From positions 50,120 to 114,119 of the forward strand of contig FLMG01002775.1 of the NCBI GenBank assembly GCA_900088475.1: DNA of 64,000 bases, given 5' to 3'. The notes under the pieces are model-generated. The model was not told where the DNA came from and searched no databases. It saw only the letters and a list, made by a program, of their open reading frames with translations. The translations under genes and the position numbers were made by a program. Shown piece after piece: positions 49,094-58,164 of this stretch. Source of the stretch: Hyphochytrium catenoides (Eukaryota > Protista > Hyphochytriomycota). The first letter of the stretch is position 1; each line of letters opens with the position of its first letter.

Positions 49094-51293
49094 ATGAGTA
49101 GTAAGGGTGCGGCCCAGCAGTTCAAACTGCTGAATGGGCACTCTAGCTACTTTGCTAAACCTGGAGGAGTGCTTCCTCCCAAGACTCCTCAATCGAATAA
49201 CTCTCCCATGCCTCCTCCCAAGCACACAGATGGAAAGGCAGCTTCCATCAACCCTCAGAGTCACCAGCTAAAGCCCCTATATAAACCCACGGCTCTAGAA
49301 ATGGGCAAGGACGAAAGTGCTTTAATGGAACTTGAAGAGGCGCTCGCGAATATGTACCTAGCCAATGCAAAATCCCCATTTGCGCGTAGCTCCCGCTTTA
49401 CTAAGGATTTTACCGAGATGTACTCAGACTCTAGGTAAGAAGAGGTCAATACTTGATCGCAGTATTCCCGGAGAGAGAGAACGATCCCGGTGGATGACGT
49501 GTGCTCTCAAGCCGAGACATCAAAGACAGCTCAGGATCGACAAGGGTCACTAACTACCTTCGCCTTCTAGTCTGGACTCTCTCCGTAGACGAAAACAGCA
49601 ATTGGAAGAGAGTCTGGCCAAGAGGAAGCAGGAAGAGGAATCCAGAGCAGCACTGAAGGTCAAGCTTGCAGAAGACGAGGAGGAAAAGATCCGACTGCGA
49701 AAGGAGAAGCGAGAACAGCGCCGCTTGGAGGCTGTTAGGCAGAACTCCGCGGCAATGGAGATACAAAGAGTATTGAGAGGGTACTTTGGTCGCAAGCAAT
49801 ATAAACGGTATCAACCTCTCGCTGGCCCTAAAAATGTACATCCTAATGTCGCTCTTTACCAGCGCATCTATGCTATCTCACTCTATACCATGAAAATCCT
49901 AGCCTTCATCTGAATCCTACTAATAACACCTTCGATTTTCCTCCCGCAGGTTGAAAGAAGAGAAGATGATAGCAGCCGCGAATATCATCAAGTCAAGCAT
50001 GAAGTCCCATCTGCAAATTCAGAGAGCCAAGCGGGAGTTGGACGACCTTAAGCTTAACAAGCGGAGATTGGACAGCGGACGATATATCAACTTCAAGATT
50101 GTGACATTTATGAAGATCAAGCAAGCCAAGAAGATTCTTCTGGAGAAGAAGAGAGAGAGGGATGAGGTACTGCAAAAGGAAGCGGAGAAAAAGATGGGTA
50201 TCGCCGCAGTGCAAATTCAGCGAATAATCCGAGGAGCTCAAGGAAGGAAGAAGAGCCGACAAGCTTTTGAGGAGAGAGAAAAGAAGAGGGAAGAGAGAAG
50301 GAAAGAGACCCAAAAGAAGTCTCGCTCTCCGGAATCAAAGAAGACCAAAGGCGCAGACTCCAAATATAACCGGGGAGCGACCTCAAGGTGTGAACCAATC
50401 CGCATCATAAGTTGAAGGAATATTTAGTATCAGTTACCTCCCTTCAGGTGGATGCCCTCTCCTCTCTCTTTCCCTTCTCATGTATGCTCTACTCCGTCCC
50501 ATGGAACCCTGCTAACTCCCCTTCTTTCTTCCTTTGCAGAGAAGCATCGACCTCACCTAAGGGGGCGACATCCGCTCCACGACGGCCACCAAACAAGGCA
50601 GTGACTAACCGAATGGCGTCAAAAAAGAGCTTAATATTGCACAAAGATAAGGAAAGTGACGTTAATCGAAGAAAGAGTAAAGATCAGCTCTTAGCAAAAG
50701 ACGAGACCTCATCGCAAGGGAAAGAGGAAGTTGTCGGAACGGGTAACGAAGCTAGCAGCGCACCATATATAGAAGCGGGATCGTCATCAAGCTCTACACG
50801 ACCTGGTAGCAATGGGGGCTCCCAGCAATCCTCTCATTCCCGTCCCATCACTGCAAGTGGGGGTAGGGGACCTCGCACTCAGACAAACAGCAGTACTGAC
50901 ACGGATGGGGCTGCTCATCTCTCATTGAGACCTGGAAGTCAAGATAAGCCAGAAAGGTTGCCTGCTGCTGACTCTCCAACAGAAGGCCGAGGTTCCGAGA
51001 GGCCGTCGGAGTCCGAATGGGAACAGGATGAGCTAGAGGAAGATCGAGAGGAAAGTTCAGACTATCCTTTGACAGACATCTCGGCCAACGACCTAGAGCA
51101 AGATGATAAGCTTGGGAGGGCAATGGCAGAACAGGGAAGCCAGCAATACCTTGAAACAGCCAAGGCAGCGACGGAAAAAGGCAAAACCTCGGCAGAGTTC
51201 GCGGAGAACGCAGGGACACAGGATGCCCCTTTTCAGAAGCCAATCGTCCCGCAGAGTGAAAGTAGACCAGCGGTACTAGCGGATGAACATTAA
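49094..51293 (+). CDS. IQ-motif / coiled-coil protein (putative calmodulin binder), 4 coding exons
   Basis: IQ motifs AAMEIQRVLRGYFGRKQY and AAVQIQRIIRGAQGRKKS plus degenerate copies; E/K/R-rich coiled coil; disordered C-terminus. Exons (~49094-49434, 49571-49808, 49950-50387, 50540-51293) join in frame. Confidence 0.8.
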
Positions 51294-51383: not shown

Positions 51384-54300
51384 CTACCACGAAGAATAGT
51401 TGCCGGAATCCCATCGGGATGCAAGTTTTTTCCTTTCTTCAGTAGCCACTTGGGCCGCCTCATCTCGCGACCGAATAGAAGGCTGGTAGGCCGTGCCCCC
51501 TACATTTTCCTCCAAACTGTTGCTGTTGGACGCGACAGTGATCTGGGTTTCCAACTGATTTAAGTCCCTCGCTGGAACCTTTAGAGGCGGGCTTGCTAGC
51601 GACCGTAGGTGTCCCATCCCACCCTGTGCTGCACGAGGCTGAGGTTCTTCTTTCTCCTCGGCAAACGTTTCGTCACGTTGCCTAAAAGATCGCTTCTTGG
51701 CGAGGAAGTTTCCACGTCTAATCCTCATTTGGATGGGCTTGGGCACCGCTCCAAGATAGCGGTACATAAGCTTTCAAGAGATTAGGAAGGTTAAAAACTC
51801 AGGGAAGTCCCAAGACGGATAACGACAACAATATCAACATCAGTTCAAAGGTGAAACTCCAGAGACGAGAGGTGGGGCAGTCCTAGCAAGAACACACTCC
51901 ATAGGAGGAGCAGAAATGACTTGTAGCCACTCAAAACGCATCAAGAGAAAGGCAAGCTAGTAATAACGGTTAAAGACTCTGTAGCCCTTACCCAACAAAT
52001 CAGTAAGAGTGCATGTTCCGCGACCACAGCATCAATAACCCTTGTGGTTGCATTTATACAACCAAAGTCTGGAGTGAGCTTGAAAGCTCTGGCAGTACCC
52101 GAAAGTTGCAAATGGTAGAGAACAAGGGGCAAGCTGTTAGGGACCCAAGAGCAGAGCCAGGATTGTGCGGCGAGCTGGTTGATGAACAGGGATGAGTTGC
52201 CCCAATAACCTCAAGTTAAGCCCTACCGCAAATCAGGCCCAAACCGCTGCCGGAAGGTATCCCTACAGCTTTGGAAGAACATCTCATATGCTCCTACAAA
52301 TAGATATCCCAGAGACACGGCCAGTAGAGGGAACAGAAGACTGATTAAGGGCTACCAAGGCCTTGACCAAGGACGCAATCAGGGGAATTGATGTGAAGGG
52401 AACACTGAGAAGGACAAGGGATGGTAAAACAGGCACTCGACTCAAAGCGTTGAGCTAGATATACAACCACGTGCTACCACCTGTAGATACGAAGACGAGC
52501 GCAACCTGTCACAAGCGCTCCGTTAGTCATGTTCACGGACTTTAGGAGTCAAGACCAGCCTTCCTCTTACATTTATAAGCAAACCGGAGATGGCAAGAAA
52601 GTAGAGGACTCTCTCCCACTCTCCAATGCCCCGAGCTCGTCTTGGACAGGGCCTCTAATTTTTTTATGCAATCAGTGTCAGTGTCGTCCACCGAGACTCT
52701 TAAATAGCTCTTCGAAGGCATATTGGTTGTGATTTGTCTTACCTTGCCCGTCTGGCAAAGTCTGAAGACATCTCCACGTAGTTTGAAGGCATTGATGATG
52801 AAACACACGAAAGGCATGGGAGGCCACAGCATTCCAAACCTAGGGACCACGGTAGTAGAGACAATGTGAGACGAAAGAGATGGTAAAGTTGTCACTGGAA
52901 TGGAAGCGCCAGGAAGAGGAGCTAGACAGGAGTATCACCCTTACATGACTACAAAGCCATACTGAACGATAGCTGCGTGATAGTCTTCATAGGGATCATA
53001 GTTCACTTGACTATGTTGGAACAAAAGGTCTCGGGCCTATCATGGTTGGTTAACCGGTAAGTGAACCGTCTCTGCGTATCTTCTCTACGTCCGCTTTATT
53101 TTAGTGTTGATTCCATTCACTGCCCACATCGTGACTCTGTATGCCCTTTGCCCCATCTGACTAGGGAACTCATCCACCCCTGCCGCTGATCAAATTATTA
53201 CCTTAGTGTTTAGTAGCTCCAAGTCATCTGCATTGTTCTCAATGAATTTCTGTCTTTCCATGTTTAAAAACGGATCCCTAAGCACAGATGAAGGCAAGAA
53301 CCAAGTAAGCTCGGACGTGTAAAAATGGTCAACGGCATTTCCTTTAGATTCAGTTGGCCAGACGCCGTTACGAACCTATCTGTTTCAAAGTCCAGCTCTC
53401 CCAAAAGCTTCTTCTCTCCTTTTGCTCTCGCTGCACGCATGAGCTAAGGGAATGCGGCAGTGAAGAGGAGTTCAGTCAAACCCGGCGAAACTTCCTGTCC
53501 TTCTCCAGCCTCAGGGGATCCTACCTCTCTGTCAGCTCTCCGTCTCCAAAACTCTTGACGCTTCTTGAGAACCCATGGGACAAGTATTGCCACTAAGAGA
53601 TTGAGTCCTGAAAGCCTGTTAGACTTTCCCCCAACAGAGATCGAGCGATACAATTCCCGCAAGAATTACAACAGCGAGAAAGCGAAGAAAAGGGGCCACG
53701 AACGGTGGCTGAAGAAGAAGCATCAAGACGACAGTTAGTGCAGAAATGCAGGGGAGCCCTATAAGCTCGTCATTCAAAATTGTTGGGAGGATAGTTAAAT
53801 GTAGATGGGCGGCGAAGAGTGAAGTAGCATTGAGCGCCGAATACCACCTTGGGTGATTATTATGGGAGTGATGAACAGCTGCTGAAGGTCCAAGTTCTCT
53901 CGATCAAATGTGATGAGCCCTCGGCAGGGACGACAGGAATCTGGGGATCGGGGACAGGACGCGCAGGAGGAGCCACCCTCCTTAAGATATGGTCCGAAAC
54001 AGCAGTTCATAGGGTCGCGCCACAGGGCTGGAGGTAGTCGGTCAGACAGAGCATATTGGATGACAAGGCGACTTGCACCATCGATAATGTAGCACGAGAG
54101 CAGAACCCATTAGAGGGCAATAACAAAGAAGGAAGAAAGCGTGGAAGGGCATCACACGTACCACTATTTAGCAGATTGGTGACGAGATCACCTTGCCCTG
54201 GTATGACATACACAAAAGCCAACTGCCAAGGGTTAACGTCAAGAAAGCGGTTAAGCGTCCGAAAAGCATGGAGGGGTGGTCCCGGCTTTATGATGTGGAG

Positions 54301-57300
54301 TCTATGGGAAAGAAGACATTCGACGGCGCGAGAGCCCGGACGATCTACTTCTTGATACACTGCAACAGTCACCTTACCAGTAAGAACCACATATAGTAGT
54401 TGATGAAGTCCAAGAGAAACAGCTTCCGAATTAAGGACTTTTCAAATTGCTATTGGAGAGAGGAGAATGATTGATGAAGAAGACAATCTCAGTCGTAAGA
54501 TTTGGGATAGCAGCATTTGACATGAGTAAGGGTGAACCTCTTCTGTTCTCCAGTTCTCCCAACTGGTGAATAACCGTGCGGCGTTGCTGACGATAACATT
54601 CCACTGACATGAGTGAAGCATCCGAACGGTGAGTACGACTGATCAATACAACCCCTCCAGTCGGCCAGACACTTATCGTACCTGAAAGATATCAACGAAG
54701 AGGCCAAAGATGATGCCTCCAACCAGTATTAAAGACCACTAAGGAACAAACAGGGTGCAAGCTTAATTAGATAAGAATATGGTGTAAGGGAGACTGGCAT
54801 GCAACAGAAGAGAACAGCTCTAGAGTAAAGAGTGCCTGAGCAACCAGAAGTCGTCAACAACGAAGCAAAGATGATGCCTCCAACCCCATTTAGGGCCTAC
54901 TGAGGTACAAACAAGGTTGACAAACGTAAAGGATGTAATGTGGAGAGACTGGGATGCCACAAAAGAGAATAGGCGTATTGGCTCATAAGCTCAAGAGTAA
55001 AGAGTGACCGCGCACCGAAAGTCATAGCGAGCAGTAAGTACGGCGACACAATGTGAGCAAAATACGGCGACAAGAGATGAGAACTACAGCGTGCAGCGGC
55101 CGAACGTAGGAAAGACCTCAAGTGTAAACAAAGAAGACATCGACTTTGCGATACCTGGATGGTGAAGAGGCCCGATTGTGGAAAGTGCACCTTGAGAGCC
55201 TCAAAGGCAGTAATCCAGATCCCAATGAAAGCAATCATCACAACCATTTGAACCAGTAGAAATAGCCCCGAACAGATGAACTGAGGCACATGAAGGGAGC
55301 AAGAATAGGACTGTCAACGTCGATGTCCAGGAGGACCGCTGCGGAGTCATCTATGCTGAATTCACGAATACAAGGCCTATGGCAGTTCTAAACTCAAAAT
55401 AGCCAGAGACAATCGTGCCTCACCTTGGGCACTCTTTTCCACGAAGCATAAGCAACGGTTATCTCGCCAGTCACAGGCGAAACGACGCTAGATCCATAAA
55501 ATCTAGGGTTATGATATTCGAAACCCTGACAAGTTATGTTAGAGCTTAGCTATCAGGGTTACATCTTCCGAGCTGGCAGCTATGACTGCCATACGTATGC
55601 CAGCATACCTGCGAGTTTTCACCTCGAGCTTCACTCCAAGAGTATCGAAGCTCGGCTTCAAGCAGCGCGACAGGATGGAACAACGGGATAACCGGATAGC
55701 AAAGCTGAGAGGGTCCAAGAAGACAATTTGGCAACCAGAAACGGCCTACCATTTCTTCTCTGCCAGTGCTTCAAGAACAAAAAGGACCAGAAGACACAAA
55801 TAGTTGCGCCCCAAAAAGGTAGGATCTAGGAGGAACACGACAGGCCACAGGAAGTGAGGAACAGGGAGAAATCGAAAAGTAACATTTCGATTACCAGCAC
55901 GTAAGTCTGCTTGGAGATAGATCCTGACTCTTGGACTATAGTGAGCAACATTCCCAGCAAAGCTAAAGGAAGCAGCCACGTGCTGAATGAAGAAGCATTA
56001 GGCATAAGGAGCACCAAGCAATTTTTTTATACGGGGTCAAATAGATGAAGTTTGGAGAGAGATAGGTGCGCAGAGCTTCCATGCTTCCTCCCAGAAAGAG
56101 TATGATGCCTAACTGACTTGTAATGGCTCATGAAGGCGAAGTAATACGCCACTTTCTCCCCAAAATTGAACCTCACAGTCTCTATGAACGCATTCCTACG
56201 GCAAAGAGAAGTTCTGAAGGTTACCGCTATTATGGAATGAAAAACGCGGCCGCATCCGAGACATATTCAGTAAGAGGGTAGCGTGCACAGGGAAGAACGT
56301 AGAGGCAACCAGCGCTAAGTAGTCAAATAGAGATAAAAAGAGCCACAAAGCTCAATGCGGATAACAGTAAGCTCACGCTTTCAGCTCCAGTTGAGACCCC
56401 GAGTACTTCGCCAAAAGGAAGAGGTTGATCTCCTCGTCATGTACAGGGAACACGTCCGCGATATAGCTGCTTTTCTCTGGTGAAACACTGCACTGTTCCC
56501 GCACCACATAGTCCAATATCTGCACCCTTTCAGCCTATGGACGAGCCCAGAGATATGTGAATCGTCCCTAATCATCTCCGGTAACGCAGCACCACGCCTT
56601 CACATGTTGGGCAGTTTTGCACTCCATCCCTTCGTTCTATTCACTGCCATTGTATTAGTGCCGTCTTCTCCCATCCTCCTACGTACCGGAGTGATAAGGA
56701 AGTTCCGGGCGGTATCGAGCACGTTGATTTCCAACCCATGGCGCTCTTAAGGTGGTGAAAGGACCCCCACAGCATGAGGATGTTTGATGACAAGCAGGAC
56801 AGGACTTAGCGGAGTGGTGCAACTTGTTCTCATCCTTTCCGCTTTACTTCATCTTGCCAATTTCCGCACTCATCTCCAACTGTGCAAGGCCCAACATTCC
56901 TCCTGGTTCCTCTCTCATCTTCGTCTATTCTACCTAAACTACACGGGCTTGGCAACAAACGTACCGTCCTCCAACCATTGCTTCTGCTGGAGCTGGAGCC
57001 AAATGTGCTTTACGACATCAACCTCGGCCCTTATGAGCAGGAGGTAATACTTGCTCAACTGCATGCAGGTTGTGAGTTCTTCGATTCGTGAAAAGTTGCA
57101 GCTGCGTCGCCAGCACCGTCCCTCGAATCCCTCCACCTAGCTATCTACCCTCTCTCTTATGTCCAATGTACGTATACGCTGGTCGCTTGGTTAGCAGCAG
57201 AAGTTCAACTCACCAGGGTGTCCGTGTCACCCCCGCTAGTGATAATGTCGACAGAGAGGCCGCTTTGGCAGAGTTTCTCCACAATCTGCCTATCAGTCCA

Positions 57301-58164
57301 ACACCAAACGCCAAACAGTTCAACAAGAAGAATAAGGAAGAGATAATTTGCTATATGACAATAGCAAGATGCCGAGTGCCACAATTCACGAACGTTAAAT
57401 TTGCAGTCAAACAGTCAGGCAAGCCGTAGACCAGAGTGGTAGCACTGGACAAAGCACGAGCTTAACGACGAGAGAGAAAGTGGCAGCTTCAAACCTACTC
57501 AATGCAAGCAAAGGCTTGGTCATCTTTCCAGTCCGTCTCCGCGACCCTAGTGACTGCAAAGATTCCTTTTCGTCTCTTAAGCCTGATTAGGATTATGAGT
57601 TAGGCGTATTGCAAACTATTCAACGTCTTCCTCACGATAACGCGAAGGAAAGGAGGGACCTAGAGCTGGATATTGCCCTCAGCCGAGAAGCCTCCAGAGA
57701 ACTAGCTAGGAAGGTACGGAACTCAACAGAGTTAGGAGGAGCTCCAACATCAAGCTGCATATATACAAAACGCAATGCGAGGCTTGGATAATAAAGACAT
57801 GGGCTGAGCGGGGCACACACCGCTTTTTGATTACAATGGCGAGATCGTAGACAAGTTGCTCCTCTCTTAAGTGTGCGCCTTTGAGGTACCGGCTGCGCCC
57901 TACCCCTCTTTCCTTTGCCTTGTCGAGCTCTCTAGAAACACTAGACTCTTCGGTGCTCTCCCGCTGATCCTCAGAAAGCATGATGGGTTGAGCAGTTGAC
58001 ACTAGACCCCGTCGACGGGCTGAGCTCTGAGTCCCATATGATGGTGGAGGTGGTCTCTTCCTCGAGTAAAGCTGCTGCGTTTCCGCCGTAAGACGAGTTG
58101 GACCGAAAGCACTTGCCATAGGTGCCAAAGGTGGGGTCCCTTGCCTTGAGGGTGGACGATCCAT
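51384..58164 (-). CDS. Anoctamin/TMEM16 family channel or scramblase, multi-exon; start uncertain
   Basis: VRFNFGEKVAYYFAFM, FLKHWQRRN-AELRYSW, FTSWENWRTEE|QFEKSLIRKLF..DFIN, YDPYEDY...QYGFVVMF..LWP, LRGDVFRLC...RPCPRRARGIGEW, AEHALLL. Confidence 0.92.
54693..55025. repeat. Diverged ~165-bp tandem duplication covering an anoctamin 3' splice site and part of an exon
   Basis: CAAAGATGATGCCTCCAACC is identical at 54705-54724 and 54866-54885; further matching blocks (GAGACTGG.ATGC.ACA.AAGAGAA; AGAGTAAAGAGTG) occur in both copies. Confidence 0.85.

Follow-up and report, generated by a model that had tools for sequence, protein, structure and literature searches.

Proteins of the TMEM16 (anoctamin) family, homodimers of butterfly fold whose groove faces the lipid, are usually described as Ca2+-gated, and their superfamily relatives, OSCA/TMEM63 and TMC, have a related fold and function without the Ca2+ pocket of helices 6 to 8. 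In that pocket five acidic residues bind two Ca2+ ions and clamp helix 6 (PMC12618243), and TMEM16A, TMEM16F and TMEM16K bind further Ca2+ between transmembrane helices 2 and 10 (TM2 and TM10; the other helices are abbreviated likewise) via E425, D879 and D884 ('a' isoform), acids that are required for Ca2+ sensing at this third site and whose replacement in double alanine mutants of TMEM16A abolishes it (PMC7786149). In yeast IST2 (PDB 9HHE, 2025), three of the five pocket acids are replaced, K443 substitutes for Ca2+ by bridging E379 on helix 6 and D476 on helix 8, and lipids are scrambled constitutively without Ca2+ (PMC12618243). Here we analyze a stretch of 64,000 nucleotides (nt) of Hyphochytrium catenoides DNA (contig FLMG01002775.1, positions 50,120 to 114,119), referred to below as the window. 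Its minus strand carries, from position 58164 to position 51384, an anoctamin gene which six-frame translation and reading of the strand resolved into 28 exons with 3042 nt of coding sequence (1013 codons). With a probability of roughly 0.6, we read this locus as an intact gene whose product, a TMEM16/anoctamin-family protein with ten membrane helices and about 1000 residues, has lost canonical calcium control.

Residue positions were compared using the Pfam Anoctamin profile (PF04547) as a common ruler, calibrated with pieces of mouse TMEM16A, whose numbering is used here. These pieces were checked against chains of the Protein Data Bank (PDB): three matched at 100% and one had two mismatches, both outside the key residues. 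The piece covering residues 702-743, a 100% match to the PDB chains of the 5oyb group, lies ungapped on profile positions 328-369 and also aligns ungapped to TMEM16F, TMEM16K, nhTMEM16, afTMEM16 and IST2, with K443 of IST2 at the E705 position and D476 at the D738 position (chain coordinates, offset 58). Read in this way, the positions that matter for Ca2+ binding are the following:

53588-53590, minus strand: E654 position (helix 6 ligand), Ala, codon GCA; best local alignment
52983-52985, minus strand: E702 position, Asp, codon GAC; Pfam ruler and local alignment
52974-52979, minus strand: position 704, His, codon CAC (52979-52977), and E705 position, Ala, codon GCA (52976-52974)
52782-52784, minus strand: E734 position, Lys, codon AAA; Pfam position 360 in both proteins
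52770-52772, minus strand: D738 position, Asp, codon GAT; Pfam position 364 in both proteins
55769-55771, minus strand: E425 position (third site, TM2), Lys, codon AAG; Pfam position 63 in both proteins

Two of the five acids of the main pocket are kept, both as Asp (702 and 738), and the other three are Ala, Ala and Lys. A first-pass annotation of this DNA had reached the same assignment by manual alignment, placing Ala, Ala and Lys at E654, E705 and E734 and Asp at the remaining two positions, and the Pfam ruler and the local alignment agree with it. The peptides it quoted for the three helices were all found on the minus strand in modelled exons: the TM7 peptide YEDYHAAIVQYGF in exon 53036-52945, the TM8 peptide IINAFKLRGDVFRL in exon 52839-52743, and the TM6 peptide ...TQ/G/LNLLVAILVPW spliced from exon 54027-53848 to exon 53607-53525. 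Residues 1-30 of the TM8 exon are ungapped on profile positions 342-371, the TM7 piece ending at 341, and among the neighbours in TM8, N731 (52793-52791) and R736 are kept while N730 has become Ile. In TM7, TMEM16A 702-713 falls on residues 18-29 of the exon, DYHAAIVQYGFV (local alignment, z 5.8; one of 2000 shuffles reached the score). All the critical pocket residues sit within exons, away from splice edges, and their codons lie in the span given by the first-pass annotation (52770-53610). The His that had been noticed near the site does exist. It occupies position 704, with the ligands at 702 and 705 on either side, but helix geometry argues against its facing the pocket as they do. We found nothing in support of the suggestion that the protein could be gated by pH, tension or lipid.

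The register of TM6 was taken from a comparison with the PDB-verified TMEM16A piece 630-671, in which N650 corresponds to Asn (53602-53600), N651 to Leu and P658 to Pro (53578-53576). The acidic residues nearest to the Ala at the E654 position are located 20 residues upstream and 12 downstream, with no Asp or Glu from -19 to +11, and hydropathy gives a single hydrophobic segment between TM5 and TM7, so that the loss of the helix 6 acid holds in any register. A splice form with acids at these positions, which the first-pass annotation had named as a finding that would overturn its reading, was also looked for. When every exon peptide was compared with the full window by tblastn, no second copy of the exons of TM7, TM8 or the second half of TM6 (TM6b) came up. 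Two alternatives would keep the frame: an internal AG located 15 nt into the TM6b exon (53607-53593), whose use would delete GLNLL, and skipping of the exon with the first half of TM6 (TM6a; 54027-53848, 180 nt), both flanks of which are in phase 1. Neither of them adds an acidic residue.

The third site shows a similar picture. For TM2, the TMEM16A PDB chain reads LWAATFMEHWKRK... at 418-447 and lies on profile positions 56-85 (the typed piece differed from it at two non-key positions); besides the Lys at the E425 position, the K428 position is occupied by Gln (55762-55760). For TM10, TMEM16A piece 864-908 matched the PDB at 100%, and its aspartates 883 and 888 are D879 and D884 shifted by a four-residue insert. 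The sequence VPKPIQMRIRRGNFL in the last exon aligns to TMEM16A 889-903 (local alignment, z 3.0), and the two aspartate positions read Tyr and Ala; there is no Asp or Glu in the 40 residues that follow the TM10 Glu (in AEH). In the predicted protein the three acids of the third site are all gone, with Lys, Tyr and Ala in their place, and no known Ca2+ site is intact. Lys stands in place of two of the missing glutamates, E734 of the main pocket and E425 of the third site.

Judging from sequence, loss of canonical Ca2+ gating would be the most likely consequence of these substitutions, and it is made more likely because the third, allosteric Ca2+ site is also without its acids. We regard it as very probable that the locus encodes an intact anoctamin with dismantled Ca2+ sites, and as probable, with less assurance, that the predicted protein lacks the canonical gating by Ca2+ binding. 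The lost pocket acids are a criterion for the Ca2+-gated members of the family and not for the TMEM16 fold, and IST2 lacks them too.

Membership of the family itself is indicated by six exon pieces that match PF04547 in collinear order (profile positions 1-20, 51-69, 198-222, 317-341, 342-371 and 374-401). Each piece scores between 11.9 and 22.1 bits, below the 28-bit cut-off for a whole protein, and the total of about 108 bits is a rough sum over separately scanned exon pieces and not the score of a joined protein. The match is nevertheless beyond chance, because six collinear matches with this sum coincide with 28 exons in one frame with canonical splice sites. The pieces of TM7, TM8 and TM9 are contiguous on the profile, without insertions or deletions over two exon joints, and this continuity gives independent support to the splice sites from TM7 to TM9. 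Hydropathy over the exon chain reveals hydrophobic segments for all ten helices in the family order, and several family motifs are present, namely FGEK.A.YFAF before TM1, W.RR after TM2, WEN.RT before TM5 and Q[FY]GF in TM7. A Pfam scan of the N-terminal exons and of the tail detected no extra domains.

The complete exon model, in which the assignments rest on profile matches, motifs, splice phase or hydropathy as indicated, is as follows:

51384-58164, minus strand: whole gene model, ATG at 58164, TAG at 51386-51384, one open frame
57817-58164, minus strand: exon 1, N-terminal low-complexity region, 116 amino acids, no Pfam domain
56687-57754, minus strand: exons 2-6, cytosolic N-terminal domain, boundaries by splice phase only, no Pfam match
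57754-57636, 57582-57499, 57289-57214, 57058-56965 and 56745-56687, minus strand: exons 2-6 individually
56377-56534, minus strand: exon bearing the FPVHDEE motif, upstream of TM1
56118-56195, minus strand: exon bearing the FGEKVAYYFAF motif, at which the Pfam Anoctamin domain begins (profile 1-20, 20.6 bits)
55895-55982, minus strand: TM1 exon (hydropathy)
55750-55825, minus strand: TM2 exon with the third-site position (profile 51-69)
55609-55655, minus strand: short exon finishing the W-x(10)-W motif after TM2
55424-55525, minus strand: exon GFEYH...WKRVPK, cytosolic loop between TM2 and TM3
55155-55280, minus strand: TM3 exon (hydropathy)
54682-54738, minus strand: TM4 exon (hydropathy)
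54538-54603, minus strand: exon bearing the WENWRTEE motif
54378-54449, minus strand: TM5 exon (profile 198-222, 21.3 bits)
54162-54222, minus strand: exon of the second half of TM5 (hydropathy)
53848-54027, minus strand: TM6a exon, Cys-rich loop between TM5 and TM6 and first half of TM6, ending ...IIITQ
53525-53607, minus strand: TM6b exon, second half of TM6 (LNLLVAILVPWVLKK...) and start of the basic helix
53443-53376 and 53277-53202, minus strand: two exons, long charged linker between helix 6 and helix 7
52945-53036, minus strand: TM7 exon (profile 317-341)
52743-52839, minus strand: TM8 exon (profile 342-371, ungapped, 22.1 bits, E 8e-5)
52571-52654, minus strand: exon RPCPRRARGIGEW... 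and first half of TM9 (profile 374-401, 19.8 bits)
52473-52442, 52404-52356 and 52174-51992, minus strand: provisional exons, end of TM9, loop between TM9 and TM10, and TM10
51384-51770, minus strand: last exon, end of TM10 (LMYRYLGAVPKPIQ...), tail of about 100 amino acids, stop codon

All the introns of this model are GT-AG and there is no frameshift or in-frame stop over the 3042 nt, which bears out the earlier statement that the rest of the gene looks intact. Counted over all three frames, the density of stop codons in introns is about 1.6 times that in exons. Intron lengths range from 53 to 416 nt, the exception being a provisional 37-nt intron in the region of TM9 and TM10. For this region (52473-51992) at least three exon models keep the frame, one of them with a 32-nt micro-exon and the 37-nt intron and another with a Cys-rich loop exon. 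After TM10, the C-terminal tail of about 100 amino acids ends in ...GNYSSW, without a basic cluster at its end. Right after helix 6, at 53570-53390 on the minus strand, there is a long and strongly basic stretch, KKRQEFWRRRADRE followed by LMRAARAKGEKKLL, and the linker between helix 6 and helix 7 is unusually long.

Two further features of the locus can be mentioned. The 5' half of the TM4 exon and its acceptor region are duplicated some 161-172 nt away, within the 416-nt intron: 54866-54917 versus 54705-54756 are 79% identical over 52 nt, and 54988-55014 versus 54816-54842 are 85% identical over 27 nt. The duplicate reads ..GVGGIIFASLL.., but a TAG breaks its frame at the acceptor and it lacks a donor of compatible phase; it looks like a decayed tandem exon duplicate. 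Downstream of the anoctamin gene, open reading frames of a convergent neighbouring gene on the plus strand (49951-51293) contain a basic segment that is IQ-like and a tail rich in Ser and Glu. About 90 nt separate their end from the stop codon of the anoctamin, and the two genes probably abut or overlap at their 3' ends.

Relatives of the protein were sought with exon-sized queries. Two metagenome scans, one with the stop-free segment spanning the TM8 exon and one with the TM6a exon, gave none; a word search with the TM8 segment returned nothing, although it sees only proteins of 72-227 amino acids and is silent on full-length relatives; and a whole-library HMMER search with the 53-amino acid FPVHDEE exon yielded no anoctamin, where a TM exon might have reached further. 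Searching PDB sequences (phmmer) with the single TM6, TM7 and TM8 exon pieces gave only chance matches. Since exon-sized queries miss relatives below about 45% identity, these empty searches are not proof of absence. The only whole-library matches, P0001 and P0002 (E 4e-5 and 1.5e-4), were discarded: both are junk translations of tandem repeats in which several stretches matched, and neither is an anoctamin. They are a caution about the E-values that short queries can reach against repeats.

As to how such a pocket might work, the likeliest mechanism is one in which the ammonium group of the Lys would fill the emptied cation pocket and pair with the two kept aspartates, the equivalents of 702 and 738. 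With two acids kept and one Lys gained, the net charge of the pocket would be about -1, equal to that of the Ca2+-loaded canonical site and to that of yeast IST2. A built-in positive charge had already been put forward in the first-pass annotation, and the idea is plausible and has a solved precedent in K443 of IST2, but it is not new, and the geometry of the Lys differs from that in IST2. That the pocket Lys acts as a resident cation is a tentative proposal, to which we give somewhat less than even odds. The protein would then operate in an internal membrane without need of Ca2+, probably constitutively, as a lipid scramblase or a leak pathway, like IST2 and TMEM16K; the more specific assignment as a constitutive scramblase of an internal membrane is possible, if slightly more doubtful than the role of the Lys. 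Because helix 6 has no acid it cannot be held by the pocket, and whatever holds or moves it would lie outside; the long basic helix that comes next is one candidate. The basic stretch after helix 6 could be the counterpart of the extra cytoplasmic helix that stabilizes helix 6 in IST2, or else a calmodulin-type site. A more far-reaching version seems unlikely to us: with all known Ca2+ sites abandoned and helix 6, the gating helix, freed from the pocket, the protein would be a Ca2+-free TMEM16 reached by a second route that differs in structure, and its gate would be set by something outside the pocket, for instance lipids, pH or the long basic helix behind helix 6.

Several points weigh against an intact anoctamin that has lost canonical calcium control. 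The splicing is a predicted one and the search for RNA runs listed none; the TM9-TM10 part of the exon model is provisional, though the finding on the Ca2+ pocket is unaffected by it. The alignment of TM6 to TMEM16A is not better than those obtained with shuffled sequences and is not significant alone, and no relatives in which the Ala/Ala/Lys combination could be compared were found with exon-sized queries. The pairing of the Lys with the aspartates is purely something we infer and, helix 6 being uncoupled, the resting state could equally be apo-like and of low activity. In fungal TMEM16s such an uncoupling of helix 6 from the pocket is accompanied by collapse of the groove (PMC12618243). It would also suit a protein that has lost transport activity and persists in a structural or tethering role in the membrane, or that regulates the other anoctamins of this genome. 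We consider such a fate unlikely, given that none of the ten helices or family motifs is missing and the frame stays open across 28 exons, that fungal TMEM16s scramble slowly even without Ca2+ (PMC12618243), and that the tail of about 100 amino acids has no long tether with a polybasic end as in IST2.

It is likewise improbable that Ca2+ or another cation still regulates the protein, be it at a reduced single site made of Asp702, Asp738, Asn650, Asn731 and backbone, or indirectly through a Ca2+ sensor, calmodulin for instance, on the basic amphipathic stretch after helix 6, KKRQEFWRRRADRELMRAARAKGEKKLL. The pocket does keep two aspartates and two asparagines, and the linker between helix 6 and helix 7 is unusually long and basic; however, a Lys within the pocket should repel cations, and the loss of three of the five pocket acids is accompanied by that of the third site, where the double alanine mutants of TMEM16A lose Ca2+ sensing (PMC7786149). 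Finally, the substitutions might belong to a decaying or unexpressed gene copy, or be the product of an exon model that is wrong in the critical exons. The empty search for RNA runs, the lack of relatives among the matches of exon-sized queries, the intronic remnant of a duplicated TM4 exon and the intron modelled at just 37 nt could be taken in this sense, but the frame is intact over 3042 nt with all introns GT-AG, the Pfam match runs without insertions or deletions over the TM7/TM8/TM9 joints and the critical residues are inside exons, making this explanation very improbable. We rejected a pseudogene as the main explanation on account of the frame and the splice sites, which are intact throughout.

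The probable loss of canonical calcium control in an intact anoctamin would set this protein apart from most of the systems with which it can be compared. OSCA/TMEM63 and TMC proteins are separate Pfam families, whereas the present protein matches Anoctamin itself. TMEM16A/ANO1, a Ca2+-activated Cl- channel, belongs to the same family, but its E654, E702, E705, E734 and D738 are A, D, A, K and D here, and its E425, D879 and D884 are K, Y and A. The protein resembles TMEM16K/ANO10, nhTMEM16 and afTMEM16 in its ten-helix Anoctamin core and cytosolic N-terminal domain, in the shortness of its outer loops and in a TM7-TM8 region that aligns without gaps; these Ca2+-activated scramblases, in contrast, retain all five pocket acids, and TMEM16K also retains the third-site pair E259/D615 (PMC7786149).

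The likeness to IST2 extends to the TMEM16 fold, the replacement of three of the five ligands, one of them by a pocket Lys, the two acids kept and the same net charge, and in both proteins the helix 8 Asp (D476 in IST2, the D738 position) is retained. The arrangement is nonetheless different. In IST2 the Lys is on helix 7 (E705/E506 position), where the present protein has Ala, its own Lys being on helix 8 (E734). IST2 keeps the helix 6 Glu (E379), which is Ala here with no acid nearby, so that a bridge to helix 6 is impossible. The acids kept are on helices 6 and 8 in IST2 and on helices 7 and 8 here, and the very long disordered tether of IST2, with its basic end, contrasts with a tail of about 100 amino acids that lacks one. 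In itself, this is one more uncharacterized member of the family, identified from sequence alone, and the replacement of Ca2+ by a Lys was already known from IST2; its arrangement of residues is unlike that of IST2, and the third site is lost too. A natural TMEM16 with its Lys on another helix, no helix 6 anchor and no third site would be a useful comparison for IST2, and one that would help to show which contacts hold the scrambling groove open.

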